Origin: Anthoceros angustus | Lineage: Eukaryota > Plantae > Anthocerotophyta | NCBI GenBank assembly: GCA_010909165.1 | Contig: VJWM01000401.1 | Span: 1-18,205, forward strand | Direction of reading: 5' to 3' | Length of the DNA stretch: 18,205 bases | Shown: piece after piece, positions 1-18,205 of the stretch | Layout of the letters: every line of letters begins with the position of its first letter | Numbering within the stretch: position 1 is the stretch's first letter | The notes under the pieces: generated by a model | What the model saw: the letters and a program-made list of their open reading frames with translations, nothing else | The model's database searches: none | Told to the model about the DNA's origin: nothing | Translations under genes and position numbers: made by a program

Positions 1-24
1 TCCGTCCGGATCCATAGCAGCACG

Positions 25-838
25 ATGTCGGGGCCGATGTGGAGATGCACGAGCCGCGACGTGGCTGAGCCGAGATGGGCCGCACCATAGGGTACAAAGA
101 CACACCTACGGATTAGTATTGGTCAACATTGACGAGGACGCATCAAGAGAGCATCCATCGGGGTGATACCCAAGCTAGTCAACGTGATGGCAACCACCAA
201 CCTTCACGTGCAATTGACTTGCATCATTTGGGCCTCCACCTCCCCAACGTGAGTACCGCCCGAGCAAAACGGCGGAGCTATGGCAACGTGAGGGTCCGAC
301 TCGGTCCTGGCCTTACCGACATTGCGCGTGTTCGTGTCGACGTGTGAACGTGCTAGGACCAGCATCGCCGCCAATGTAATGGTGTTTGCGAGAAGTCGGT
401 CGCGATGGTCAACAGTTGGGGTACAATGCACATTTTGATCCTAACGACTTCACGGTTTCCAACATTGTGCCGGACGCGAAGTGCTTAAAGATAAAGATAG
501 ATACGCAATCGACTTGGTAGAGCTTCACGCAACCCTAGCCAAGATATGAGCCGGCTCAGTCGAAACGATTGCGCCTCGACGCACCGGCATTGAGAGGGTT
601 CAAGGGTTGATAGCGAAGTTCAAGAGAACTTGGCCGTCACTATGTTCCATTCAGACACCTCCACATCTCCGAGGAAGGACTATTGCACCGTCAGATTTAA
701 GTTTTTGAACAGATCCCATCCCACCGCACACCAAACGAAAAGAACGGTAACCAACCCGACTGGGACGCAGACGAGCTCCGTCGCAAGAGAAAGCGGTCGA
801 AAAGGACTACTTCCATGACCGAATCATATCAATTGTGA
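25..838 (+). CDS. TBP: Divergent TBP-family (TATA-binding protein-like) gene, copy 1, frameshifted as read
   Basis: Same unit as copy 2. In-frame pieces include YGNVRVRLGPGLT and AVTMFHS. Several indels break the frame. Confidence 0.85.
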
Positions 839-1271
839 CTATAGGGAGTATGGCTTGGATTCGATCAATTTGATTAGTTGGACAATTGAAACACATTGTA
901 AACAAATGAAAGAAATTTTGATGGAAATGAAAGTGATGTTCTCACTTGCATGCACCGGGGTGAGGGAAAAGGAAGGCACCGCCATTCGCTAAACCATCAA
1001 TGAGCATTTGTTGTCCTTGGGTCATGGTGCGTAATATTATTATAGTTTTTATCGAGACATTCTAGCTTGCAGCATTGGCCAAAGGCCAAGGACAAGTAGT
1101 CCTATAAGTATAACGCAGAGCTAGTATATAGGTAGTAGCTACTACCACTCCAACGAAAGTCGCGCGCCCTTGAAACAAACCATTTCCGTCCGTGCGGTAG
1201 GCTGCAGCCACCAGTCCAACGAAAGTCGTGCGCACTTGAAATCATTTCCCGTCCGGATCCATAGCAGCACG

Positions 1272-2103
1272 ATGTCAGGGGCCGATGTGGAGATGCACGA
1301 GCCGCGACGTGGCTGAGCCGAGATGGGCCGCACCATAGGGTACAAAGACACACCTACGGATTAGTATTGGTCAACATTGACGAGGACGCATCAAGAGAGC
1401 ATCCATCGGGGTGATACCCAAGCTAGTCAACGTGATGGCAACCACCAACCTTCACGCAATTGACTTGCATCATTTGGGCCTCCACCTCCCCAACGTGAGT
1501 ACCGCCCGAGCAAAACGGCGGAGCTATGGCAACGGTGAGGGTCCGACTCAGCGGGTCCTCGGGGCCTTACCTGACATTGCGCGTGTTCAGGTCAGGACGT
1601 GTGAACGTGCTAGGACCAGCATCGCGTCAGCAACAGAATGGTGTTTGCGAGAAGCTGGTCGCGATGGTCAACAGGTTGGGGTACAATGCACATTTTGATC
1701 CTAACGACTTCACGGTTTCCAACATTGTGCTGGACGCGGAAGTGCTTAAAGATAAAGATAGATACGCAATCGACTTGGTAGAGCTTCACGCAACCCTAGC
1801 CGAAGATATGAGCCGGCTCAGGCTGAAACGATTGCGCCTCGACGCACCGGCATTGAGAGGGTTCAGTGGGTTGATAGCGAAGTTCGAAGACAGCAACTTG
1901 GCCGTCACTATGTTCCATTCAGGACACCTCCACATCTCTGGAGGAAGGACTATTGCACCGTCAGATTTAAGTTTTTGAACAAGATCCCATCCTCGCACAC
2001 CAAACGAAAAGAACGGTAACCAACCCGCTGACTGATGCGATCCGGTCGCAAGAGAAAGCGGTCGAAAAGGACTACTTCCATGACCGAATCATATCAATTG
2101 TGA
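1272..2103 (+). CDS. TBP: Divergent TBP-family gene, copy 2 (best preserved), frameshifted as read
   Basis: ORF 1411-1698 gives IPKLVNVMATTNLHAIDLHHLGLHLPNV (cf. TBP VPxLQNIVSTVNLxxxLDLxxIALxxxNAEY). ORF 1526-1978 gives LTLRVFRSGRVNVLG, LGYNAHFDPNDFTVSNIVLDAEV, IDLVEL, GFSGLIAKF and AVTMFHSGHLHISGGRT. These match both TBP pseudo-repeats (TALIFSSGKMVCTG, LGFxAKFxDFKIQNMVGSCDV, FPGLIYRM, VLLIFVSGKVVLTGAK). Alignment by eye. Confidence 0.92.
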
Positions 2104-2350
2104 CTATAGGGAGTATGGCTTGGATTCGATCAATTTGATTAGTTGGACAATTGAAACACGCTTGTAAACAAATGAAAGAAATTTTGATGGAAATGAAAGT
2201 GATGTTCTCACTTGCATGCACCGGGGTGAGGGAAAAGGAAGGTGGAAGGCACCGCCATTCGCTAAACCATCAATGAGCATTTGTTGTCCTTGGGTCATGG
2301 TGCGTGTAATATTATTATAGTTTTTATCGAGACATTCTAGCTTGTCAGCA

Positions 2351-2542
2351 TTGGCCAAAGGCCAAGGACAAGTAGTCCTATAAGTATAACGTGCAGTAGC
2401 TAGTATATAGGTAGTAGTAGCTACTACCACTCCAACGAAAGTCGTGCGCCCTTGAAACAAACCATTTCCGTAGGCTGCAGCCACCACCAACGAAAGTCGT
2501 GCGCACTTGAAATCATTTCCCGTCCGGATCCATAGCAAGACG
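2351..2542 (+). promoter_or_regulatory. Putative promoter module of the TBP-like unit (present in each spacer)
   Basis: TATAAG/TATAA at 2379-2389 and TATATA at 2404-2409. Palindrome GTAGTAGCTACTAC at 2414-2427. Imperfect direct repeat CCAACGAAAGTCGTGCGCxCTTGAAA..CATTTCC at ~2432-2471 and ~2487-2523, ending ~20 nt before the ATG at 2543. Function is inferred. Confidence 0.5.
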
Positions 2543-3361
2543 ATGTCAGGGGCCGATGTGGAGATGCACGAGCCGCGCGACGTGGCTGTCGGAGCTGAGA
2601 TGGGCCGCACCATAGGGTACAAAGACACACCTACGGGATTAGTATTGGTCAACATTGACGAGGACGCACTTCGAAGAGAGCATCCATCGGGGGTGATACC
2701 CAAGCTAGTCAACGTGATGGCAACCACCAACCTTCACGTGCAATTGACTTGCATCATTTGGGCCTCCACCTCCCCAACGTGGAGTACCGCCCGAGCAAAA
2801 CGGCGGAGCTATGGCAACGTGAGGGTCCGACTCGGTCCTGGCCTTACGACATTGCGCGTGTTCGTCGGGGCGTGTGAACGTGCTAGGACCAGCATCGCCG
2901 CAATGTAATGGTGTTTGCGAGAAGTCGGTCGCGATGGTCAAGTTGGGGTACAATGCACATTTTGATCCTAACGACTTCACGGTTTCCAACATTGTGCCGG
3001 ACGCGAAGTGCTTAAAGATAAAGATAGATACGCAATCGACTTGGTAGAGCTTCACGCAACCCTAGTCAAGATATGAGCCGGCTCAGTCGAAACGATTGCG
3101 CCTCGACGCACCGGCATTGAGAGGGTTCAGTGGGTTGATAGCGAAGTTCAAGAGAAACAGCGTCACTATGTTCCATTCGTGACACCTCCACATCTCGAGG
3201 AAGGACTATTGCACCGTCGTGCAGTTTTTGAACAGATCCCATCCATCGCACACCAAACGAAAAGAACGGTAACCAACCCACTGGGGCATGCGGCGATCCG
3301 GTCGCAAGAGAAAGCGGTCGAGTGATGGACTACTTCCATGACCGAATCATATCAATTGTGA
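2543..3361 (+). CDS. TBP: Divergent TBP-family gene, copy 3, frameshifted as read
   Basis: ORF 2507-2908 gives the N-terminus MSGADVEMHEPRDVAVGAEMGRTIGYKDTPTGLVLVNIDEDALRREHPSGVIPKLVNVMATTNL and TLRVFVG. Confidence 0.87.
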
Positions 3362-3805
3362 CTATAGGGAGTATGGCTTGGATTCGATCAATTTGATTAG
3401 TTGGACAATTGAAACACATTGTAAACAAATGAAAGAAATTTTGATGGAAATGAAAGTGATGTTCTCACTTGCATGCACCGGGGGTGAGGGAAAAAGGAAG
3501 GCACTGCCATTCGCTAAACCATCAATGAGCATTTGTTGTCCTTGGGTCATGGTGCGTGTAATATTATTATAGTTTTTTTATCGAGACATTCTAGCTTGCT
3601 CGCAGGCATTGGCCAAAGGCCAAGGACAAGTAGTCCTATAAGTATAACGTGCAGTAGCTAGTATATAGGTAGTAGTAGCTACTACCACTCCAACGAAAAA
3701 GTCGTGCGCCCTTGAAACAAACCATTTCCGTCCGTGCGGTAGGTCGACCACCACCAACGAAAGTCGTCGCGCTTGAAATCATTTCCGTCCGGATCCATAG
3801 CGACG

Positions 3806-4614
3806 ATGTCGGGGCGATGTGGAGATGCACGAGCCGCGACGTGGGCGTGAGCCGAGATGGGCCGCACCATAGGGTACAAAGACACACCTACGGATTAGTA
3901 TTGGTCAACATTGACGAGGACGCATCAAGAGAGCATCCATCGGGGTGATACCCAAGCTAGTCAACGTGATGGCAACCACCAACCTTCACGCAATTGACTT
4001 GCATCATTTGGGCCTCCACCTCCCCAACGTGGAGTACCGCCCGAGCAAAACGGCGGAGCTATGGCAACGGTGAGGGTCCGACTGGTCCTGGCCTTACCGA
4101 CATTGCGCGTGTTCGGTCGACGTGAACGTGCTAGGACCAGCATCGCCGCAATGTAATGGTGTTTGCGAGAAGTCGGTCGCGATGGTCAACAGTTGGGGTA
4201 CAATGCACATTTTGATCCTAACGACTTCACGGTTTCCAACATTGTGCCGGACGCGAAGTGCTTAAAGATAAAGATAGATACGCAATCGACTTGGTAGAGC
4301 TTCACGCAACCCTAGTCAAGATATGAGCCGCTCAGTCGAAACGATTGCGCCTCGACGCACCGCATTGAGAGGGTTCAAGGTTGATAGCGGTTCAAGACAA
4401 GAACTTGGCGTCACTATGTTCCATTCGTGACACCTCCACATCTCGGAGGAAGGACTATTGCACCGTCGTCACGAAGTTTTTGAACAGATCCCATCCCACC
4501 GCACACCAAACGAAAAGAACGGTAACCAACCTCAAGACTGACGACGAGCAATCCGGTCGCAAGAGAAAGCGGTCGAAAAGGACTACTTCCATGACCGAAT
4601 CATATCAATTGTGA
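3806..4614 (+). CDS. TBP: Divergent TBP-family gene, copy 4, frameshifted as read
   Basis: Same unit. The C-terminal frame reads GRKRKRSKRTTSMTESYQL* with TGA at 4612-4614. Confidence 0.85.
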
Positions 4615-5027
4615 CTATAGGAGTATGGCTTGGATTCGATCAATTTGATTAGTTGGACAATTGAAACACTTGTAAACAAATGAAAGAAATTTTGATGGAA
4701 ATGAAAGTGATGTTCTCACTTGCATGCACCGGGGTGAGGGAAAAGGAAGGCACGCCATTCGCTAAACCATCAATGAGCATTTGTTGTCCTTGGGTCATGG
4801 TGCGTGTAATATTATTATAGTTTTTATCGAGACATTCTAGCTTGCTCGCAGGCATTGGCCAAAGGCCAAGGACAAGTAGTCCTATAAGTATAACGTGCGA
4901 GCTAGTATATAGGTAGTAGCTACTACCACTCCAACGAAAAAGTCGCGCCTTGAAACAAACCATTTCGTCTGCGGTCACGAAAGTCGTCGCACTTGAAATC
5001 ATTTCCGTCCGGATCCATAGCGGCACG

Positions 5028-5853
5028 ATGTCGGGGCGATGTGGAGATGCACGAGCCGCGCGACGTGGCTGCCGAGATGGGCCGCACCATAGGGTACAAA
5101 GACACACCTACGGATTAGTATTGGTCAACATTGACGAGGACGCATCAAGAGAGCATCCATCGGGGTGATACCCAAGCTAGTCAACGTGATGGCAACCACC
5201 AACCTTCACGTGCAATTGACTTGCATCATTTGGGCCTCCACCTCCCCAACGTGGAGTACCGCCCCGAGCAAAACGGCGGAGCTATGGCAACGTGAGGGTC
5301 CGACTGGTCCCTGGCCTTACCGACATTGCGCGTGTTCGTGTCGGGGCGTGTGAACGCAGGACCAGCATCGCGTCGCCAATGTAATGGTGTTTGCGAGAAG
5401 TCGGTCGCGATGGTCAGTTGGGGTACAATGCACATTTTGATCCTAACGACTTCACGGTTTCCAACATTGTGCCGACGCAAGTGCTTAAAGATAAAGATAG
5501 ATACGCAATCGACTTGGTAGAGCTTCACGCAACCCTAGCCAAGATATGAGCTCAGTCGAAACGATTGCGCCTCGACGCCGGCATTGAGAGGGTTCGGTGG
5601 GTTGATAGCGAAGTTCGAAGACAGCAACTTGGCCGTCACTATGTTCCATTCAGGACACCTCCACATCTCTGGAGGAAGGACTATTGCACCGTCGTACGAA
5701 GTTTTTGAACAGCTGTATCCCATCCTACTGGCACACCAAACGAAAAGAACGGTAACCAACCCCGCACCTGGGACGGTACGAGCAGTCCCGGGTCGCAAGA
5801 GAAAGCGGTCGTAGCAGTGGACTACTTCCATGACCGAATCATATCAATTGTGA
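5028..5853 (+). CDS. TBP: Divergent TBP-family gene, copy 5, frameshifted as read (alternative stop TAG at 5812-5814)
   Basis: ORF 5584-5814 reads GLIAKFEDSNLAVTMFHSGHLHISGGRTIAPSYEVFEQLYPILLAHQTKR...GRKRKRS*. YEVFEQLYPIL matches the TBP C-terminal helix YxAFENIYPIL. Confidence 0.9.
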
Positions 5854-6280
5854 CTATAGGGAGTATGGCTTGGATTCGATCAATTTGATTAGTTGGACAA
5901 TTGAAACACAGTTGTAAACAAATGAAAGAAATTTTGATGGAAATGAAAGTGATGTTCTCACTTGCATGCACCGGGGGTGAGGGAAAAGGAAGGCACCGCC
6001 ATTCGCTAAACCATCAATGAGCATTTGTTGTCCTTGGGTCATGGTGTAATATTATTATAGTTTTTATCGAGACATTCTAGCTTGTCAGCATTGGCCAAAG
6101 GCCAAGGACAAGTAGTCCTATAAGTATAACGCAAGCTAGTATATAGGTAGTAGTAGCTACTACCACTCCAACGAAAAGTCGCGCCTTGAAACAAACCATT
6201 TCCGTCTGCGGTAGGGTCCAGCACCACCCAACGAAAGTCGTGCGACTTGAAATCATTTCCGTCCGGATCCATAGCAGACG

Positions 6281-6575
6281 ATGTCGGGGCGATGTGGAGA
6301 TGCACGAGCCGCGCGACGTGGCCGGAGTCGAGATGGGCCGCACCATAGGGTACAAAGACACACCTACGGATTAGTATTGGTCAACATTGACGAGGACGCA
6401 TCAAGAGAGCATCCATCGGGGTGATACCCAAGCTAGTCAACGTGATGGCAACCACCAACCTTCACGCAATTGACTTGCATCATTTGGGCCTCCACCTCCC
6501 CAACGTGGAGTACCGCCCCGAGCAAAACGGCGGAGCTATGGCAACGTGAGGGTCCGACTCGGGTCCCTGGGGCCT
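6281..6575 (+). pseudogene. 5' part of TBP-like copy 6, truncated at the junction with unrelated AT-rich sequence
   Basis: Identity to the unit ends at ...GACTCGGGTCCCTGGGGCCT (6575). Non-array sequence CACAAAGTGGTTTTTTTGGGG follows. Confidence 0.9.
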
Positions 6576-6677
6576 CACAAAGTGGTTTTTTTGGGGTAGT
6601 GTAAATTTTTAGAGAGAGAAAATTGACCTTTTGGTCATTATTTTACCCAGAGAGTAAAATTCATTACAGTATAGTAG

Positions 6678-6750
6678 AAAATCATCTACCATCAAGGTAC
6701 AAAACAACTGAACCATACAAGTGGGGTAAAAATCATCTACCATCAAGGTA
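6678..6750 (+). repeat. 22-bp direct repeat near the left end of the insert
   Basis: AAAATCATCTACCATCAAGGTA at 6678-6699 and 6729-6750. Confidence 0.85.
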
Positions 6751-6859
6751 GAAAATAGAGCACTAGAGTAGAAAACATGACGACCAAGTGAATACCAGCT
6801 GGGTCTAGAAGCTCATTCTAGAAATCCCACCAAAATCGCTAATCGACAAAACATTTTCT

Positions 6860-7660
6860 TAAATAATATTCATGCGGATCCGGGATATACAAAAACCAAC
6901 AAAGAAACCTTTTCTTTGCGAGTTTCTGTATATCCGTAATGGCATGAAATACAAATTCAACTAATGAAGAGTAAAGATAGATTGAACTCGCTAGATTGAA
7001 CTCTACTTCAACAACAATGGAACCTACAAACAAACAAAACAAAGACACAAACCGTGATTAGTGATACTAGAAAACGGAAATAATCATAGCAAATACTTAG
7101 GAAATGATACTCACCTTATTTAGGAAATTGATCGCATAATTATCTGATTGAAAACGTAATTTTCACGACCACTTGGCTTGATTGGCGGTTGTACAGATCA
7201 TTCTTGGCAACCAATTGATGAAGCGAGGACTTGGGCGAAATTGTCCCTTCCGCAAGGTGACAACCTAATAAAATACAACCATTGATTTTCAAATTAATAA
7301 AGAGCATAAGAAAACTTACCAATCTCGACGGATTTTCGCAGATAGCAAATATCTCGAGACACATTCTTCTCTCGCCTCTCTTTTCCACCGCAGTCTTGAA
7401 CCTCTTGCTCCATCTGCCGCCGCTTTCTTGATGCTTAATGTGCTCTTGTCTCCTCTCCACATTTCTCCGCCTGGATCTCAAGGGCTTTCTCTCTTTGCTT
7501 AGAGACTCGTAATTCAACCGCTACTGTCTCTCTATAAGAGCCTCCAAATCCTTTTGTCACGAAACTCCAATTCTGCCCATCATACTCCAATTCCGTACTC
7601 GCGCAATCTCGGTCACCGCTCAAAGCCACTTCCATTTCCATTTGAGTCACAATACAATAT
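6860..7660 (-). CDS. Multi-exon coding remnant of unknown function (a second gene or the 3' extension of the YR gene), frameshifted
   Basis: Minus-strand GT-AG introns at 7319-7265 (GTAAGT...TATTAG) and 7114-7024 (GTGAGT...TTTGTAG), plus a donor at 6908. Exon 7023-6909 is open (GSIVVEVEFNLASSIYLYSSLVEFVFHAITDIQKLAKK). Charged segment ELRVSKQREKALEIQAEK. Confidence 0.45.
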
Positions 7661-7667
7661 CGAGGTG

Positions 7668-7845
7668 CTACCAACATTGTGCCGACGCACCGGCATTGAG
7701 AGGGTTCGGTTGATAGCGAAGTTCAAGACAAGAACTTGGCCACTATGTTCCATTCAGTGACACCTCCACATCTCGAGGAAGGACTATTGCACCGCATTTA
7801 AGTTTTTGAACAAGGACTACTTCCATGACCGAATCATATCAATGT
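7668..7845 (+). repeat. Internally deleted fragment of the TBP-like unit
   Basis: CCAACATTGTGCCGACGCA|CCGGCATTGAGAGGGTTC...GACTACTTCCATGACCGAATCATATCAAT matches non-contiguous parts of the unit. Confidence 0.9.
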
Positions 7846-8013
7846 TGAAATGAGGGATGAAGGTCGCTTCCACTAGTCGCAGGATTCACAACGCCAAGAT
7901 AAACATAATCGAAACTCCAAAAAGAAGTGAAACAAACAAAGACAAAGAATCAACCTTGTCAACATATGGAATTTCACTAGAACACCCGATTGTTGGTCTG
8001 TTATCCATCGATG

Positions 8014-8215
8014 CCTTGGCCACTATGTTCCATTCAGACACCTCCACATCTCTCGGAGGAAGGACTATTGCACCGCATTTAAGTTTTTGAACAGATCCCA
8101 TCCCACCGCACACCAAACGAAAAGTCGCGACTTGAAATCATTTCCGTCCGGATCCATAGCGAAGTTCAAGACAAAGAACTTGGCCACTATGTTCCATTCA
8201 GACACCTCCACATCT
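8014..8215 (+). repeat. Rearranged mosaic of TBP-like unit fragments
   Basis: TBP 3' segment, then spacer segment, then TBP 3' segment again. Joined at ACGAAAAG (8117-8124) and ATAGC (8156-8160). Confidence 0.9.
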
Positions 8216-8389
8216 TGACATTGTTCAAAGGTCCTTTCATGATGAACAAGGAGTTGTAGAGACCTAACACACAAAACAAGTGACACGTTTAATCAAAACA
8301 AGTCCCTACAAACTTGCAACAAATCTCAAACACTTACATTGTTAACTGTTGCACTCGCAAGTGCTTAAAGATAGATACGCAATCGACTA

Positions 8390-10479
8390 GAAAATACAAT
8401 TTCGAGTCACATTGAGGAGCTTGACGGAAGAACACCCTTAAATCATCCGCATCCGATTCTTTCTTCGTTCAAAAGCTCCTGATAGGATCGCCGTTCACCA
8501 GGAACAAGGACTCTTCTCATTGTTTTGCTTGACTGACGGCCATATCTGCAAACCATATCAAAACATCAGGAAGAAACAAACAAAGGACTGAAATGTCACA
8601 AGCTTTCAAAACATATTACCTTGAGAATCCAGCATCTGTTTTATGGCCAGTCACACTTCTCCCAAAGATCGAAGGCACCGAGCCATCGTCAACGTGTAAT
8701 CATTGTTACACGGCAGCTCTTATTGGTGTAATAGCCAACGAGCCCAGCCCAGCCATGGTCTTCATGAACCTTGACAACATTCCTTTTGAAACACGGAGTT
8801 TTGCATACCAAGCCTAGCCAAAAACAAAACAGCTTAGTAAATACAAACCACAAAACTTAAGCCCAATAACAACAAAACTTAAGCCCAATAACAACAAACT
8901 TACATTTTGATCTTGGGTTATCAATTGTTGAATTGAACAAAACCCCGAATTGATGATTTTTGTCGCTTGCACCACTTGGGAGAGTGTTCAATGACTCTAA
9001 AAGTTTCGATAACATCCTCGTCAGAATCTTGACCTTTTTGACTAAATGCTCACCGGTAATTCTTCATGTCCACTTTATAATTTTTGAAAGCCGTTCTTGA
9101 TACCGCAAATAAAAGCGAGCTTAATACGACATCAAAAACAACCAAAACATACGAAAAGATACAATGAACAAAACAACCAAAACATCGAACAAAAGGTCCT
9201 CTGAATCACGAGAACGAAGTCCACGGAGTTATGTAACTCTTCACCACCTCGAACTCCAAACTGGTCATGCAAAAATATGCACACCGCAAACAGAGAGACC
9301 TCCGTGTTTAAAACCATAAATGAACAATCAAAGTGCACCCCTAAACCAACAATATTACCTTTTTGAGCCCCGCCCAAATGAGCATTGATGATCTCTGTGA
9401 AAGAATCGCTCATCATCAAAATCAACTTCACCTCTTTTCGACATGACACAATCCAAGATCCTTGATTTTCATGGACAACCACGGGACCCATGGAAAATTC
9501 CATGAAACATGTTGATCAACATCGAACCGCTTTGGTTCAAGATGCACTTCCTTGTTAAAATTCGGTTAAAACCACGAAAAGAAAGACATCAACGACAAGA
9601 GAGAAATAAATCCATGTGAATGAAAGAACTATCAAAATCAACAAGTCAAAAACATCACTACTTACGTTTCGAGAAAATCTCCTGTTGTCCTTGATTCGAA
9701 CTTGATGGAAAAAGGTATCGAATAAGATTTAGATCCTTGTAAGGAATATCCTCAACAGAGTATCCCATCCCATCCCCACTCACTTTCATAAAGGCCACAG
9801 GCGACTTGACCGCTTATTCGCCGCTTGGACCTATCCTCCCCACCACTCAAGCATCATTCAGCCCTCCGGGACTATTGGTCAAATCCGCCTCAAAATTGCT
9901 TCATCATCAATTTCCTCCATACCCATGGCAAAGTCATCTTGGGATCATCACACTTTAGCCTCTCAAACATATCAAGCACTTCTTGATCGGGGATGACTCG
10001 GTCGAACCACAGGCATGGAAAAGCCCACCAGAAGCATTCTGCTCAACGCAGACACAAATCTCTAGACTGCAGGTTTTGGCAAGACTCACAACCATGGGAT
10101 CGTCGGTTATCAAGAAATCATTCTCCCCACAACCGGACCCCTCTCTCGAATCGACATAGTTAGTAATCTGCAAGAGGACCTTCAACCAAAGCCAGTGTCG
10201 ATCCACCCTTCTCCTCTTGAACAAACTCGGGCATCGAGCGTCCTTCTTGGATGAAAATCGCCTTGGCGGTTTGGGCAAGTCTTTTGGGAACTAAGTAAGT
10301 TCCTTCATGCACCAAGACACCATCAACTTTACCATCATCCTGCAGCGGATGAGTTGCAGTATGTAGAATCGCGGATTTGACACGCTGTCTTGTATATGGC
10401 TTGGCCATAACTTCAGCCAAGGATCCTTGTTTTCTTCCCGGCCCAGCAGGCGCCCAGTGGGTTTTCTTTTAGGAGCCAT
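8390..10479 (-). CDS. Intron-containing tyrosine recombinase, Crypton/DUF3504-like, frameshifted as read
   Basis: Minus-strand motifs appear in canonical order. IFLHDQFGVRGGEELH (Arg codon 9251-9249); FKNYKVDMKN; AWYAKLRVSKGMLSRFMKTMA (from 8813); AGLVGYYTNKSCRVTMITR (8748-8692); VTGHKTDAGFS-R|Y, where splicing the 8619-8547 GT-AG intron joins AG|A TAT and gives Tyr at 8545-8543. Further introns at 8903-8814 and from 9665. Candidate ATG at 10479 (MAPKRK) follows a 5' intron 10576-10480. The 3' end is uncertain. Confidence 0.85.
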
Positions 10480-11889
10480 CTGCAAAAGCGAGAACAGAAT
10501 TGAGTGGTCAAGGAACTTGACAACACAAACATCCTGCAGGAAGTTGACAAAAAGACAAAATAAAGAAAGCACTTACATGGTGTTCACAACTTCCAGATAG
10601 GAACTCTTGAAGGGTCTAACAATTGATTATAAAACAATCGAGACGAGGATAGGGATGGGGGATATGGCACACACATTCATTGAATATACACATTGTTAAA
10701 TATTGAAATCCTCCACTTTTGGTTAGTGAGAGATAACTCCTTTTCAAACAACACCCACATACTTCCTGTAATAGAAGACTTTGTCGGCAAGTTAGATTTA
10801 AGAGGAAAAACAAACAAACAAACAAAACAAACTACGAGATTCAATCATGACTTCAAATTCAGTAAATGGTGATCCCGACCACGATGACAATCGAATGTTG
10901 TGTCAACCTTCACACGATGAACAATAAAGCCTACAAACAGAATTAGATTATTCACGATAGAACTAAACGTTAAAAGACAACGAGGTAATTATCAATGAGA
11001 AATCATCAAGTTTAAAATACTCACATACCATACGCGGGTTACACCGAACAAACGCCTTATACGTTAAGGCATTATCGCATCAAAGCAAGGACCTTAGAAT
11101 AAGAATGAGACAAAACATTGAAACACAAAACAACACAAACCTTGGCCTTGAAACAAACCACAATTCAACAAACAAGATACGTAAAGCAATAACAAAAGAA
11201 GCTTTCTGACGTACAAAAGGTCCCAAATGTGTCCGCCACACGTCCAAACCTTGATGCATCAAAAGAGCGGGAGAGTAAGATCACACAAGCAAGGAAACGC
11301 TCTCAAAGAAAGAGAGAACAAGATTTGCAGATCGACACAACAAACAACAAAACAACACAAACCTTGGCCTTGAAACAAACAAATGAAAGAACCTTCAAAC
11401 AAAAAACCAACCTTTACGTCAACAACCTCTTGTACACTCCCTGCGTTTCAAAAGGAATAAAGATACAAGAATACCGCTCAACATTATAACAATGAAAGCT
11501 CAAGAGAAGATACATTCATTTTCCAACAACAACATATCGTAAACAGAAAACCGATTGACACAAAGACATTTTGATGACTTACCAAAGTGGTCGATCTAAA
11601 CCGCACTTCAAACAAAAAGTCGCGCCTTGAAACAAACACAACGGGAGGGTTACAACACACCAGCAAAGCGAAAGTCGAGAACAAAGACTTGAACAGCAAC
11701 AAGCGCTTTTAACACACATGGGACCACGACGACAACGACGACAAAGAGACACTTCCACCAAACAAACAATCAAGCAATACGAGATTTTGCAAGAGAAAGA
11801 ACACAAGCATCACATGCAAGTTTTGAACAAAAGTAAGCCTAGCCAACCACGTTCAAGCAAGCAAAACACGTTATGAGAGGAAGTAACAC

Positions 11890-12790
11890 CATCGACGCAA
11901 TGTAATGGTGTTTGCGAAGTCGGTCGCGATGGTCATGTGTTGTACAATGCACATTTTGATCCTAACGACTTCACGGTTTCCAACATTGCCGGACGGGCGT
12001 GCTTAAAGATAAAGATAGATACGCAATCGACTTGGTAGAGCTTCACGCAACCCTAGTCAAGATATGAGCCGGCTCAGTCGAAACGATTGCGCCTCGACGC
12101 ACCGGCATTGAGAGGGTTCAAGGTTGATAGCGAAGTTCGAAGACAGCAACTTGGCCGTCACTATGTTCCATTCAGGACACCTCCACATCTCTGGAGGAAG
12201 GACTATTGCACCGTCAGAAGTTTTTGAACAGCTGTATCCCATCCTACTGGCACACCAAACGAAAAGAACGGTAACCAACCTGACCGACGACAAGCATCCG
12301 GTCGCAAGAGAAAGCGGTCGAAAAGGTGGACTACTTCCATGACCGAATCATATCAATTGTGACTATAGGGATGGCTTGGATTCGATCAATTTGATTAGTT
12401 GGACAATTGAAACACGCTTGTAAACAAATGAAAGAAATTTTGATGGAAATGAAAGTGATGTTCTCACTTGCATGCACCGGGGTGAGGGAAAAGGAAGGCA
12501 CGCCATTCGCTAAACCATCAATGAGCATTTGTTGTCCTTGGGTCATGCGTGTAATATTATTATAGTTTTTATCGAGACATTCTAGCTTGTCACAGCATTG
12601 GCCAAAGGCCAAGGACAAGTAGTCCTATAAGTATAACGCAAGAGCTAGTATATAGGTAGTAGTAGCTACTACCACTCCAACGAAAAGTCGCGCCTTGAAA
12701 CAAACCATTTCCGTCTGCGGTAGGTGCAGCCACACCCAACGAAAGTCGCGGCGACTTGAAATCATTTCCGTCCGGATCCATAGCAAAGAC
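11890..12790 (+). pseudogene. Partial TBP-like unit (3' half of ORF plus full spacer) inside the insert
   Basis: ORF 12124-12342 reads IAKFEDSNLAVTMFHSGHLHISGGRTIAPSEVFEQLYPILL. The spacer runs to CCGGATCCATAGC (~12784) and stops before the next ATG. Confidence 0.9.
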
Positions 12791-13038
12791 ACCTTGGCCT
12801 TGAACAAAACACCTTGGCCTTGAAAGAACCTTCAAACAACAAAACAACACAAACCTTGGCCTCAAACCTTTACGACACCTTGGCCTTGAACGAAGGCGAG
12901 AAAGGCCTTAAACATTGGAAAGGGCAAAAGAACCTTGGCCCCAAAACTTAAACGACGCCTAGCGAACCTAGAACACCTTGGCCTTGAATGAGCTAGAAGC
13001 ACCTTAGCCTAGCGAACCTAGAACACCTTGGCCTTGAA
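12791..13038 (+). repeat. Cluster of ACCTTGGCCTTGAA motifs
   Basis: Perfect copies at 12791, 12811, 12877, 12975 and 13025, partial copies at 12853 and 12932, and two more at 11139 and 11361. Confidence 0.85.
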
Positions 13039-14521: not shown

Positions 14522-14699
14522 CTCACGCCTCTCCTCTTCGAATTGAGCGCAAAGGTCACGCAAGAAGGCGCCACTCTAGTGTAAGTACATCCCAATCCGA
14601 AATTCTCACCTTGTTTCTGTTTTACGTGGGATGCGTCTTGTTCAGTCTGATTTGATTCTCTCCACAGTGATTACTGACTGATGGCTTTTTAAAATCAGG

Positions 14700-16180
14700 A
14701 TGGAATCTGAGAACGGAAGCAATAACGATTTTCAAATCCAAGAAGGTACTTGATTGTAATTCGTATTATACGTTTCTTACTTTCCTTTTACATTTACTAA
14801 TATCTTTTTGTGTCAACCCCTCACAAGAACTCATGACGCCACCCCGTGAGCGCCACTCGACAAATTACTTCCCACCCATGGGGATCCGGATATGACGCTA
14901 ATGCAGAGTTTGAACCACCACTGGAGATAAGAAAGATCGTAGAAAAAGGTATTCGGGAAAAATGATTGCGTTAGTCTGTATGTTCTTGGTCGAGTCTAAC
15001 AAAACCCGTGGGTTGCGTCCTCTGCGAGCACACAATGTTCTCTGTCATGGACAAACAAGACCTTAAGCATCTTTGCGAGATGCCTTGATTGAATAAGATA
15101 AAGAAGGTAAGCACTTTTCTTTAATTCATAAACTTGATCTAATTATGCTCAAATCCAAAATCTTAACCTAAATTATCTCTAGGATATCAAAAGAACCTTG
15201 AACAACATCAATTGGAAACGACACACTTGTGGAAAGGTTTAATGGACACCGATTTTCAATGCAAACAATGTTGGAGGGATATCAAAGTTCAATCCAGATC
15301 GGAGGTAATCAAATCTAATACATTCATACCTTCTTTGCTTCTTCACATTGACCTTATAACTTGGCATTACAGAATGCTGGAAAACAAGCTGTTGCTGCAA
15401 AAAACATAAAGGACAAAGTCGAAAAGATTGACAATAACATTGACAACGCAGCCATCTCCAATCAGGTATACAAAAAGTATTAGGTATATAATGTGCATTA
15501 ATATGATTTTGGTTTAAGAAATTAATGATTTTGGTTTTGATCGGGCAAAAAGAAAAATTGATGACTTCGAGGAGGATGGACCAACTTACGGGCCGTCACT
15601 TGAGTTCACCGAGTTTGGAAAGTGGATGAGCAATTTTCAATATCCACCACTTTTCAAGACTTTAAAGATAAGTATTGCACTTTGGGAGCATAGTCTAAAA
15701 GAGCAAGTACAGCCATCTTGAATGAAGATGGGTCCAACCCAACATTCGAGCGATGCAGACAAATCCAAGCAAGTAAGTCGATAACTTCTCTTTTCACTAT
15801 TATTTTCATTACATATAATTCTATGTAATGTAATTGCATGCATTGAATGCGAGATAGGGGCAGCAATTGAAAATAAGGAGTTGAAAACGAGACTTGTTGT
15901 CTCTCATGGAAGAACCGGAGACAACTAAAAACATTCAAAAGGTACATCGTTTGAAAGGTAATATCCGCTTGCATTCCAAAAAATTCTAATGTTTATGTTT
16001 CTTGAACATACGATCACATTTCCGGCAGGGGGGAATCTTCACGACGTGTTTAACGCTTGTCGAAAAGGTATATGCAAAGAAAGATCTTCTCCGAATTGAA
16101 ATGGAGGTAAATGACTAATTACTTTTACTTTTTGTTTGTAGTTATCGGAGAATCAAAGCGAGTTGTTTTCACTCTTTGAG
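14700..16180 (+). CDS. Multi-exon gene of unknown function, frameshifted as read; 3' end uncertain
   Basis: MESENGSNNDFQIQE, intron 14746-14827, then ELMTPPRER...SGYDANAEFEPPLEIRKIVEK. A clean phase-0 exon at 15373-15465 reads NAGKQAVAAKNIKDKVEKIDNNIDNAAISNQ. RAKRKIDDFEEDGPTYGPSLEFTEFGKWMSNFQYPPLFK lies near 15540-15660. Donors GTAAGT at 15773 and GTGAGT at 16181. No family recognised. Confidence 0.5.
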
Positions 16181-16540
16181 GTGAGTACTAAAGTTAAAAA
16201 TAGATAAGTTTTTATATATGAATTCGACAATGGTTTAAATTGCGAAATATTCTCGCTTGGATGAAATATTGAAATGATAATACATTTATCTGGACCATAC
16301 AATCAGCAGCTCAAAAGTACTATTCAAGAGACGGACCACTAACTATACCATATTACACTCCATCTACTCCAATAGAATATGTGTGATTAACCAAAACTAT
16401 TTTGATTAGAGCCTTACGATAAAGGATAAAGATAATCCTTTTATTGTGTAAAAGGATTGAAAAACGAAAATGATACGTAGTGAAGGGCAAGTTATCAGAA
16501 GAGAGAGAGAAATGACATATAAGCCGGTGCTATAGGCAGC

Positions 16541-17458
16541 CTAGTCAAGATATGAGCCGGCTCAGTGAAACGATTGCGCCTCGGCCCCGGACTCGGCCTC
16601 ACGGCCTCGGCCTTACCGACATTGCGCGTGTTCGCCGACGGCCTGAACGGTCTCGGCCTCACGGCCTCGACCGTTCTCGCCAACGGCGCCCTCCCTGGCC
16701 TTACGACATTGCGTGTTCGCCGACGGTGAACGCTAGGACCAGCATCGCGTCGCAATGTAATGGTGTTTGCGAGAAGGTCGCGATGGTCAACGGTACAATG
16801 CACATTTTGATCCTAACGACTTCACGGTTTCCAACATTGTGCCGACGCGGTGCTTAAAGATAAAGATAGATACGCAATCGACTTGGTAGAGCTTCACGCA
16901 ACCCTAGTCAAGATATGAGCTCAGTCGAAACGATTGCGCCTCGGCGCACCGGCATTGAGAGGGTTCGGTGGGTTGATAAGTTCAAGACAAGAACTTGGCC
17001 GTCACTATGTTCCATTCGTGACACCTCCACATCTCCGGAGGAAGGACTATTGCACCGTCGTAAGTTTTTGAACACGTATCCCATCCCACCGCACACCAAA
17101 CGAAAAGAACGGTAACCAACCTCGACTGACTGCAGACGAGCATCCGGTCGCAGAGAAAGCGGTCGAAAGGACTACTTCCATGACCGAATCATATCAATTG
17201 TGACTATAGGGAGTATGGCTTGGATTCGATCAATTTGATTAGTTGGACAATTGAAACACAGCTTGTAAACAAATGAAAGAAATTTTGATGGAAATGAAAG
17301 TGATGTTCTCACTTGCATGCACCGGGGTGAGGGAAAAGGAAGGCACGCCATTCGCTAAACCATCAATGAGCATTTGTTGTCCTTGGGTCATGGTGCGTGT
17401 AATATTATTATAGTTTTTATCGAGACATTCTAGCTTGTCAGCATTGGCCAAAGGCCAA
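16541..17458 (+). repeat. TBP-like unit, 3' two-thirds plus most of the spacer, with scrambled 5' junction
   Basis: Displaced fragment at 16541-16583 and GGCCTC-rich scrambled DNA at 16584-16700. Unit sequence then runs to TGA at 17201-17203, and the spacer to CATTGGCCAAAGGCCAA (17458). Confidence 0.9.
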
Positions 17459-17471
17459 CCGTGAGCATGTT

Positions 17472-18205
17472 ATGTCAGCAGGGGAAGCTGAGGCCGTTGG
17501 AGCCCTGGAATCTCTGGCGCAGACAGACTCTGCTGTCTGGTCTCTGTTGTACACTGTGCTGAAACTGTGTACAGCTAAGAAGGATTTGGTTGTGGGGCGA
17601 CGAGTTCATGATCTCACTGTCAAACTTGATTCGAATGCATACTTGGGAAAACCATATCTTGCGCATGTATGCATGTCTTAGAGGAGGCCATGGATGTGTT
17701 CACCAGGTGGGGAAACCAGATGCCTTCATGTGGTTTTCCATAATCTCTGCATACGCTAAGCATGGGAAACCTAATGAGGCCATACAACTGTACCATGAGA
17801 TGCGTAGGTCAGGAGTGAAGGCGAATGGTCACGTCTTTGTAGCTGCCCTTCAAGCTTGTGCATTGGCCGCCGACTTGGAATCTGGCAGAAAGTGCACTGA
17901 TGTTTTATACAGTGGCATTCCTCCTAACTTGTTTGTTGGCAACTGCCTGGTGTGCAAAATGTGGCGAACTGGAAGATGCACGCCAGGTTTTGACAACATG
18001 AGAAAGGATGTGGTGACATGGAATGCCCTGATATCTGGGTATGCAAAATGTGGTGAACTGGAAGATGCACGCCAGGTTTTGACAGCATGGCACAAAGGAT
18101 GTGGTGACATGGACGGCACTGATTGCTGGGTATGCACAGCAAGGGCTCGGCCAAGAGGCGCTTGTCGTGTATGAACAAATGGAGCAAGATGGGCGTATTT
18201 TGGCT
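17472..18205 (+). CDS. Pentatricopeptide-repeat protein, PLS-class-like (plant), frameshifted as read, probably running off the window
   Basis: Typical plant PPR motifs: VLKLCTAKKDLVVGRRVH, NHILRMYA, PDAFMWFSIISAYAKHGKPNEAIQLYHEMRRSGVKANGHVFVAALQACA, NLFVGNCLV, KDVVTWNALISGYAKCGELEDARQV. A ~90-bp internal duplication (17953-18023 vs 18041-18113) corresponds to one PPR motif. Confidence 0.93.

Follow-up and report, generated by a model that had tools for sequence, protein, structure and literature searches.

Can a DNA transposon of the Crypton type, or a gene derived from one, be recognised in plant-like DNA when its reading frame lies in pieces? The question is raised by a locus on contig VJWM01000401.1, whose first 18,205 nt, a eukaryotic and repeat-rich stretch of 18 kb referred to below as the window, were analysed. 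No order of eukaryotic DNA transposons is rarer or less well understood than the Cryptons, and the animal regulators ZMYM and QRICH1 arose from DUF3504 recombinases. The original prediction, made from the DNA letters, had proposed an intron-split tyrosine recombinase (YR) of the Crypton/DUF3504 type, representing either an overlooked plant lineage or a domesticated gene, and the gene itself is borne out by profile scores together with at least two canonical GT-AG introns. Sequence comparison establishes the family-level homology to DUF3504/CryptonA recombinases, both introns and the residue identities. The minus-strand region 8443-10479 is read here as a DUF3504/CryptonA-type tyrosine-recombinase gene and, probably rather than certainly, as the relic of a Crypton-like DNA transposon in a plant-like genome.

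Structure of the recombinase gene

The gene covers about 2 kb of the minus strand (8443-10479), and its roughly 500 codons are interrupted by two or more short GT-AG introns; this span and codon number fit family members of 450-580 amino acids (aa). In a three-frame translation its motif pieces are spread over minus-strand frames 0 and 2, and the series that runs from WY to the Tyr includes AGLVGYYTNKSCR, VTGHK, and RYGRQSS. The motifs on which the original prediction was built (FGVRGGEEL, WY, TNKSCR, VTGHK, and the Tyr) were all found again in place on this strand, in the order and spacing of DUF3504/CryptonA recombinases. The parts of the gene are listed below in the direction of transcription; bit scores are those of blocks found by a DNA-versus-profile aligner, and E-values those of separate hhalign runs of single pieces against a reference alignment, A1 (both described in the next section), in which every piece fell at the expected columns.

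10477-10479, minus strand: putative start codon, inferred by reading the sequence, opening a basic N-terminus (MAPKRKP...) directly after an acceptor-like site, ...TTTTGCAG
9666-9713, minus strand: N-terminal motif FFHQVRIKDNRRFSRN (QRICH1-like/core-binding), aligned to the family's F..EVR..DG..YP; 14.6-bit block, profile columns 49-64
9135-9515, minus strand, frame 0: stop-free piece with FGVRGGEEL
9237-9263, minus strand: first catalytic Arg box, QFGVRGGEE (family consensus FALRGGEE); 15.7-bit block, profile columns 154-162; E=0.021, A1 columns 222-238
9088-9111, minus strand: YLRYQERL block (family fLeYtedl), just ahead of the Lys-containing KtNqGG region; 13.0-bit block, profile columns 186-193
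8814-8903, minus strand: intron of 90 nt, GTAAGT...CTAG, phase 0, joining ..QDQN to AWY, read from the sequence; the unspliced reading ends in a stop
8709-8813, minus strand, frame 0: piece with AWYAKL..FMKTMAG
8748-8810, minus strand: WY block WYAKLRVSKGMLSRFMKTMAG, within a 35.7-bit block; E=0.019, A1 columns 331-350
8692-8856, minus strand, frame 2: piece with AGLVGYYTNKSCRVTMITR
8692-8748, minus strand: AGLVGYYTNKSCRVTMITR, the HxxR box, here KxxR; E=6.5e-6, 60% identity over 20 columns, A1 columns 353-372; best single piece in hmmsearch
8619-8699, minus strand, frame 0: piece with ..GRSVTGHKTDAGFS
8620-8693, minus strand: VDDGSVPSIFGRSVTGHKTDAGFS(R), the second His box (TGH), within the same 35.7-bit block; E=0.0036, A1 columns 378-395
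8546-8619, minus strand: intron of 74 nt, GTAATA...TTTGCAG, phase 2, 49% T, with GT at 8619-8618 and AG at 8547-8546
8446-8565, minus strand, frame 2: piece with RYGRQSSKTMRRV
8443-8545, minus strand: last exon, with the catalytic Tyr in R-Y-G-R-Q-S-S, a 32-residue tail and a TGA stop at 8445-8443; 12-13-bit block, profile columns 321-337

The C-terminal end hinges on the second intron. Its removal joins AG|A into an Arg codon that is followed by TAT (8544-8542), the Tyr, which comes in frame only once the intron is spliced out. The original prediction was thus right about a GT-AG intron that brings the Tyr into frame and one nucleotide short about its length, which is 74 nt (8619-8546) and not 73. 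After splicing, eight residues stand between the TGH His and the Tyr, which is the exact spacing in A1 (H375..Y384), and the 20-21 residues from the Arg of KxxR to TGH likewise match A1, where the family has HxxR. Taken singly, some of the other pieces are weak: FFHQVRIKDNRRFSRN reaches E=0.16 at its expected A1 columns (121-138) and is collinear with the other blocks, the Arg box (FGVRGGEE) is present as a match that is weak alone and sits at the correct place in the chain, and RYGRQSS aligns to A1 columns 397-403 with E=0.54.

From the YLRYQERL block down to 8904 the reading frame is uncertain. For the catalytic Lys of the beta-hairpin (SKTNQGG in the family), the candidates are FKNYK near 9080 and, in another frame, DKNHQFG (8961-8941). 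A further possible intron, at 9665 after ..RFSRN, was considered and not adopted, since the unspliced reading there aligns with the TLY..L helix of the family. The 90-nt intron holds a 22-nt tandem repeat (8846-8902, found by TRF). It had also been claimed that none of the C-terminal motifs falls in a listed open reading frame (ORF), which does not hold for the TNKSCR piece, found in a 54-aa ORF (8689-8853) when ORFs of at least 50 aa are listed. In the N-terminal part, Cys and His residues are concentrated at 9958-10158 (minus strand, frame 2), in the pattern C-x4-C-x-C ... H-x-C ... C-x2-C; this stretch gave no Pfam hit and is possibly a zinc-binding module.

Homology to DUF3504/CryptonA recombinases

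Reference sequences were obtained by scanning metagenome contigs with a back-translated WY..TNHSLR..TGH pattern, which returned at least 120 loci where an estimated 10 or so were expected by chance. An ORF runs across the motif in 104 of the loci listed, and all eight long ORFs that were scanned carry the Pfam domains DUF3504 (PF12012, 1e-19 to 1e-35) and Phage_integrase (PF00589) and the QRICH1 N-domain (PF25561). A 23-sequence alignment of the references, A1, has the consensus FALRGGEEHR, SKTNQGG, WY, TNHSLR, TGHKS, and Y-K-R. The RGGEE box is absent from the pattern that selected the references and nevertheless stands in this consensus, in line with the earlier claim that it is typical of the family. 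The A1 profile matches the QRICH1 structure 9hjt (8e-27) and, beyond it, XerC-like and XerA (~1e-10), IntI4, and XerH recombinases; the reference family therefore has the tyrosine-recombinase fold. The motif pattern had no match in viral contigs. Of note, the reference loci (L001-L120) come from a few metagenome assemblies (contigs JAAUXT01, WLWD01, JAAUYG01, VSKX01, and others) and, among the loci listed, many ORFs are open over 450-580 aa with the catalytic set intact; their sequences suggest that some eukaryote in the sampled material carries CryptonA-like elements that are abundant and probably active.

A local DNA-versus-profile aligner that allows frameshifts and GT-AG introns was run on the minus strand from 8300 to 10600. 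Its best block, 8810-8628 against profile columns 260-322, scores 35.7 bits with two frameshifts, against 15.8 +/- 1.6 (maximum 20.7) for the best block in 120 dinucleotide shuffles, which places it about 12 standard deviations (sd) above the null mean. The collinear chain reaches 69.1, versus 37.4 +/- 6.7 in shuffled DNA (maximum 54.6) and 41.8 on the plus strand of the region. Its six main blocks follow one another in family order: 9713-9666 (EVR..DG..Y), 9263-9237 (RGGEE), 9111-9088 (fLeY), 8961-8941 (KtNqGG-like), 8810-8628, and 8553-8509 (Tyr); the chain also takes in four blocks of 8-12 bits, which is noise level.

The spliced C-terminus (84 aa, with X at both breaks) scores 48.8 bits against the family profile. 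As the references had been picked by motif, this score was split by column to remove the circularity: the 11 columns of the search pattern contribute 34.9 bits, and the other 66 columns 41.1 bits, where 20,000 permutations of these non-selected columns average -34 and never exceed 7.6. That short motifs in non-coding DNA should resemble the family by chance has a negligible probability and was rejected, at the level that the shuffle null and this permutation allow: Pfam finds nothing and most single 10-15-bit blocks are no better than the best block in shuffled DNA, but the height of the main block, the collinearity, the exact spacing after splicing and the 41 bits from non-selected columns all speak against it.

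Relic, intact gene or foreign DNA

In the reading that we favour, a Crypton-like element would have landed in a tandem-repeat-rich region of a plant-like genome. Its recombinase would have had a core-binding-like domain at the N-terminus and, after it, a catalytic domain containing the Arg of the RGGEE box, KxxR for HxxR, TGH, and the nucleophile Tyr. Published Cryptons are excised as circles and reintegrated site-specifically by means of a Tyr nucleophile (PMC3212892, PMC8969392); by extension, the recombinase of the intact element would have paired short direct repeats at the element ends, released the element in circular form by way of a Tyr-phosphodiester intermediate and reintegrated this circle by site-specific recombination, leaving no target-site duplication. 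We infer in this way the transposon nature of the locus, its mechanism and the inactivity of the present copy. The likeness to the DUF3504 recombinases of animal CryptonA transposons (Kojima and Jurka, 2011; PMC3212892) takes in a putative core-binding-like N-terminus and the YR catalytic domain, the boxes RGGEE, WY, TNxSxR, TGH+, and Y-x-R at the same spacing, and a locus with neither reverse transcriptase (RT) nor a second recognisable ORF; no terminal repeats were seen in the window, and animal Cryptons are reported to be devoid of them. In contrast to these elements, the gene in the window has at least two introns and KxxR for HxxR, its host context is land-plant-like, its copy is broken or mis-assembled, and over the 84 best-conserved residues it shares no more than 23-36% identity with the references, at the edge of the range found among the references themselves (median 45%, 5th percentile 30%). 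Prokaryotic Xer, integron, and phage recombinases (PF00589) have the same catalytic fold and residue order, but the window itself goes undetected by PF00589, and the relation is shown only via the DUF3504 family.

Several observations weigh against a Crypton relic, beginning with this low identity. There is one copy only in the window, with no recognisable termini. The gene region lies between fragments of a 1.25-kb repeat, one directly downstream of the stop codon and the other about 1.1 kb upstream of the putative start, and the repeat-unit coordinates on its two sides are non-contiguous (448 on the left, 1084 or 295 on the right), so that a clean insertion cannot be demonstrated. The HxxR box, part of the tyrosine-recombinase signature cited in the original prediction, reads KSCR: it retains the second catalytic Arg and has Lys (AAG) in place of the His. 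Type IB topoisomerases have a Lys at the position of this His, and the replacement therefore need not abolish catalysis. Neither PF00589 nor PF12012 matched any of the recombinase pieces among the ten single pieces scanned (E<=1), and the 84-aa spliced, X-joined C-terminus gave no YR family in Pfam, with one spurious ABM-like match (E=0.032); fragmentation is greatest in the PF12012 region, from RGGEE to WY, which the Pfam scans covered as single pieces only. The lack of a recombinase-fold hit, which had been named beforehand as grounds for dropping the idea, is thus what Pfam returned for the pieces and for the spliced C-terminus, and it was overturned only by the family-specific profile. A 127-aa piece found no match at E<=1e-3 by phmmer among 1.84 billion representatives, and none in a word-indexed protein search, whose length filter leaves out full-length relatives; there is therefore no close relative on record in these two protein collections.

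The frame is also broken. At least two frameshift corrections are needed in the last 80 codons, with more upstream, where the soft-penalty alignment path from 9085 to 8925 requires one in-frame TGA near 9050 and further frameshifts. The two C-terminal breaks are the following.

8741-8754, minus strand: frameshift 1, GGCTG GGCTG GGCTC, placed by the aligner at about 8746-8748; dropping one 5-nt GGCTG unit gives MAGLVGYYTNK in a single frame
8690-8694, minus strand: frameshift 2, CGT T GAC, between ..ITR and DDGSVP, placed by the aligner at about 8691-8693

The copy as written in this sequence cannot make the recombinase protein. An alternative that we consider rather unlikely is that the organism itself carries an unbroken gene, be it an active Crypton or a domesticated DUF3504 gene, and that the frameshifts are indel errors of an unpolished long-read assembly; in its domesticated version it might act as a DNA-binding or transcription regulator, by analogy with ZMYM and QRICH1 in animals. 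Part of the evidence comes from the neighbours of the recombinase gene in the window.

1-6566: tandem array of five head-to-tail copies of a ~1250-bp unit
7683-8388, 11604-11637, 11887-12784, and 16540-17458: fragments of this unit
17472-18205, plus strand: pentatricopeptide repeat (PPR) gene, running off the end of the window

The five tandem units are 91-93% identical, and alignments of 1263-1281 columns contain 72-85 gap columns for some 16-37 mismatches. In their multiple alignment (66-6316), indels are at least as frequent as substitutions and cluster in G+C-rich spots, while stretches of 50-100 nt are identical across all copies. The PPR gene, too, needs about five frameshifts in 730 nt by manual frame reading, with its motifs well kept. 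In natural decay, substitutions far outnumber indels. Differences dominated by indels in the units, together with the PPR frameshifts, therefore make every frameshift in the window suspect, and the breaks may be long-read consensus errors; the indel pattern looks like uncorrected consensus error of this kind, possibly at methylated sites. Both observations count against a relic, and an intact gene would equally agree with the YR reading found between the breaks, with its exact family spacing and clean GT-AG introns. Against it, frameshift 1 is a 5-nt tandem duplication, unlike the usual 1-nt homopolymer error, the TGA near 9050 lies in frame, and the locus sits amid satellite-like repeats.

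As for domestication, the QRICH1 structure 9hjt is among the matches of the profile that recognises the window, and replacement of one catalytic residue is frequent among domesticated DUF3504 genes (WOC/ZMYM2-4, QRICH1, KCTD1, KIAA1958); the change from His to Lys could mark a loss of catalysis as in those animal genes (PMC13465315). Such genes are, however, conserved, intact and multi-domain host genes, whereas the gene in the window has a broken frame and no extra domain. The two protein searches, moreover, found no homolog regardless of length, although a conserved host gene would be expected to have one. We lean towards real damage, to which the 5-nt duplication and the TGA point. The gene is either dead or merely badly assembled, and the term relic, by which we continue to describe it, may be wrong.

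It is improbable, in our estimation, that the gene is foreign to the plant, be it as a chimera or contaminant or by recent horizontal transfer from a DUF3504-rich donor such as an animal or an arbuscular mycorrhizal fungus with Glomhoppers. DUF3504 is widespread in Opisthokonta and, among fungi, occurs almost only in Glomeromycota, which dwell inside plant tissues (PMC13465315). The Glomhoppers, DUF3504 CryptonA elements of Glomeromycota, provide an example of a recombinase of this type outside animals, and many of their copies are truncated or have introns and lie in repeat-rich compartments, like the locus in the window; by their description (from Glomeromycota and a few Mucoromycota rather than plants, catalytic His kept) they are set apart from it (PMC13465315). 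The composition of the gene region, C-poor and T-rich on its strand and with a GC content of about 41% against about 50% in the flanking repeat, is unlike that of its flanks and would also fit a foreign origin. Against this, the recombinase gene has fragments of the 1.25-kb repeat on either side, and this repeat also abuts the PPR gene, which makes a cross-organism chimera unlikely and counts in favour of our preferred reading; the chimera envisaged by the original prediction is, in this respect, not obvious. In addition, tblastn of 104 reference ORFs against the window revealed no single close relative, with at most 36% identity in the best-conserved 84 residues among the loci listed. Ancient transfer and vertical descent are indistinguishable with present data.

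Lastly, the recombinase might have been part of a retrotransposon of the DIRS/Ngaro/PAT type whose RT part is lost or lies outside the window, a very improbable origin in our view. DIRS-like elements are tyrosine-recombinase elements already known from Viridiplantae (PMC4157794), and the locus is rearranged. However, the comparison, made with the DUF3504/CryptonA profile, gives a match that includes the N-terminal EVR..DG..Y and the RGGEE, WY, and TNxSxR boxes. Furthermore, twenty other ORFs across the 18-kb window contain no RT, RNase H, methyltransferase, or other Pfam domain, within the limits that broken frames set to such a scan; the lack of an RT fits a Crypton rather than a DIRS-type retroelement, and the latter was rejected on this ground.

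Host context and the rest of the window

The host context of the recombinase gene looks plant-like, as judged from the sequence of the PPR gene alone. PPR domains at 17590-18171 are recognised by Pfam (PPR_2, 4.6e-19; PPR, 1.7e-17), and manual motif reading gives the order P-L-S, i.e., the PLS class. This order is a hallmark of land-plant editing-factor genes. The closest database matches are 30-36% identical, one of them from Solanum, and an internal direct repeat of 99 nt (17949-18045 versus 18038-18136, 89% identity) corresponds to a duplication of PPR repeats.

It is only because the DUF3504 family has been described from animals and fungi, and because this neighbour looks like a land-plant PPR gene, that the recombinase gene is notable. 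Kojima and Jurka reported Cryptons in fungi, oomycetes, a diatom, and animals, and the only 'plant' sequences in their tree are those of Chlamydomonas, named solely among the species abbreviations of a figure legend (PMC3212892). More recently, the Glomhopper paper of 2026 described DUF3504 as 'widespread in Opisthokonta' and nearly confined, among fungi, to Glomeromycota (PMC13465315). No curated land-plant Crypton was found in the literature searched (PMC13465315, PMC3212892), which agrees with the original prediction that these elements are not standard in land-plant catalogues of transposable elements (TEs); one plant TE atlas, in comparing plant TE databases, gives 535 entries under 'Crypton' for one of them (PMC8729191). 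To meet a gene of the DUF3504 type in plant-like surroundings is thus unusual. It is conceivable, if on balance doubtful, that land plants, probably a non-seed group rich in PLS-PPR genes and with short introns, possess a DUF3504/CryptonA lineage of their own, maybe acquired from arbuscular mycorrhizal fungi or animals, and that intact, mobile or domesticated copies exist elsewhere in this genome. If real, such a lineage would extend the DUF3504 family beyond Opisthokonta and allow transfer from fungi or animals to plants to be put to the test, and plant TE annotation would gain a class that its pipelines leave uncurated. Both this proposal and that of a domesticated gene rest on one copy, broken or badly assembled, and the present value of the locus is that of a lead for a targeted search, rather than of a finding on plant biology.

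The protein encoded by each ~1250-bp unit of the tandem array is TBP-like, with two repeats, and highly diverged (Pfam PF00352, E=3e-8; TBPs of the PDB, E=2e-4); its ORF had no homolog in the word-indexed protein search. A TBP-like gene in tandem copies is odd in its own right.

Upstream of the recombinase gene lies one further feature that may belong with it.

10480-11886, minus strand: non-coding stretch, 43% T and 17% C on the gene strand, ending at the 1.25-kb repeat fragments

This stretch, whose ORFs contain no Pfam domain, is a possible promoter or 5' untranslated region with small introns and, by its composition alone, may be part of the element. On the minus strand from 6567 to 11886, C amounts to 16-17% and T to 32-43%, versus 26% C in the repeat array. 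The block 6567-7682, the recombinase gene and the 1.4 kb upstream of it have this asymmetry in common, which could reflect a larger element, some 5 kb long, or a single long transcription unit.

Rfam and tRNA scans of the window returned nothing. Further along, the segment 12957-14600 is G+C-rich (52-55%), C/T-skewed and of low complexity, with tandem repeats of 24-25 nt at 12957-13038 and ORFs devoid of Pfam domains, and it is followed by an A+T-rich block (35-39% GC) at 14600-16500.

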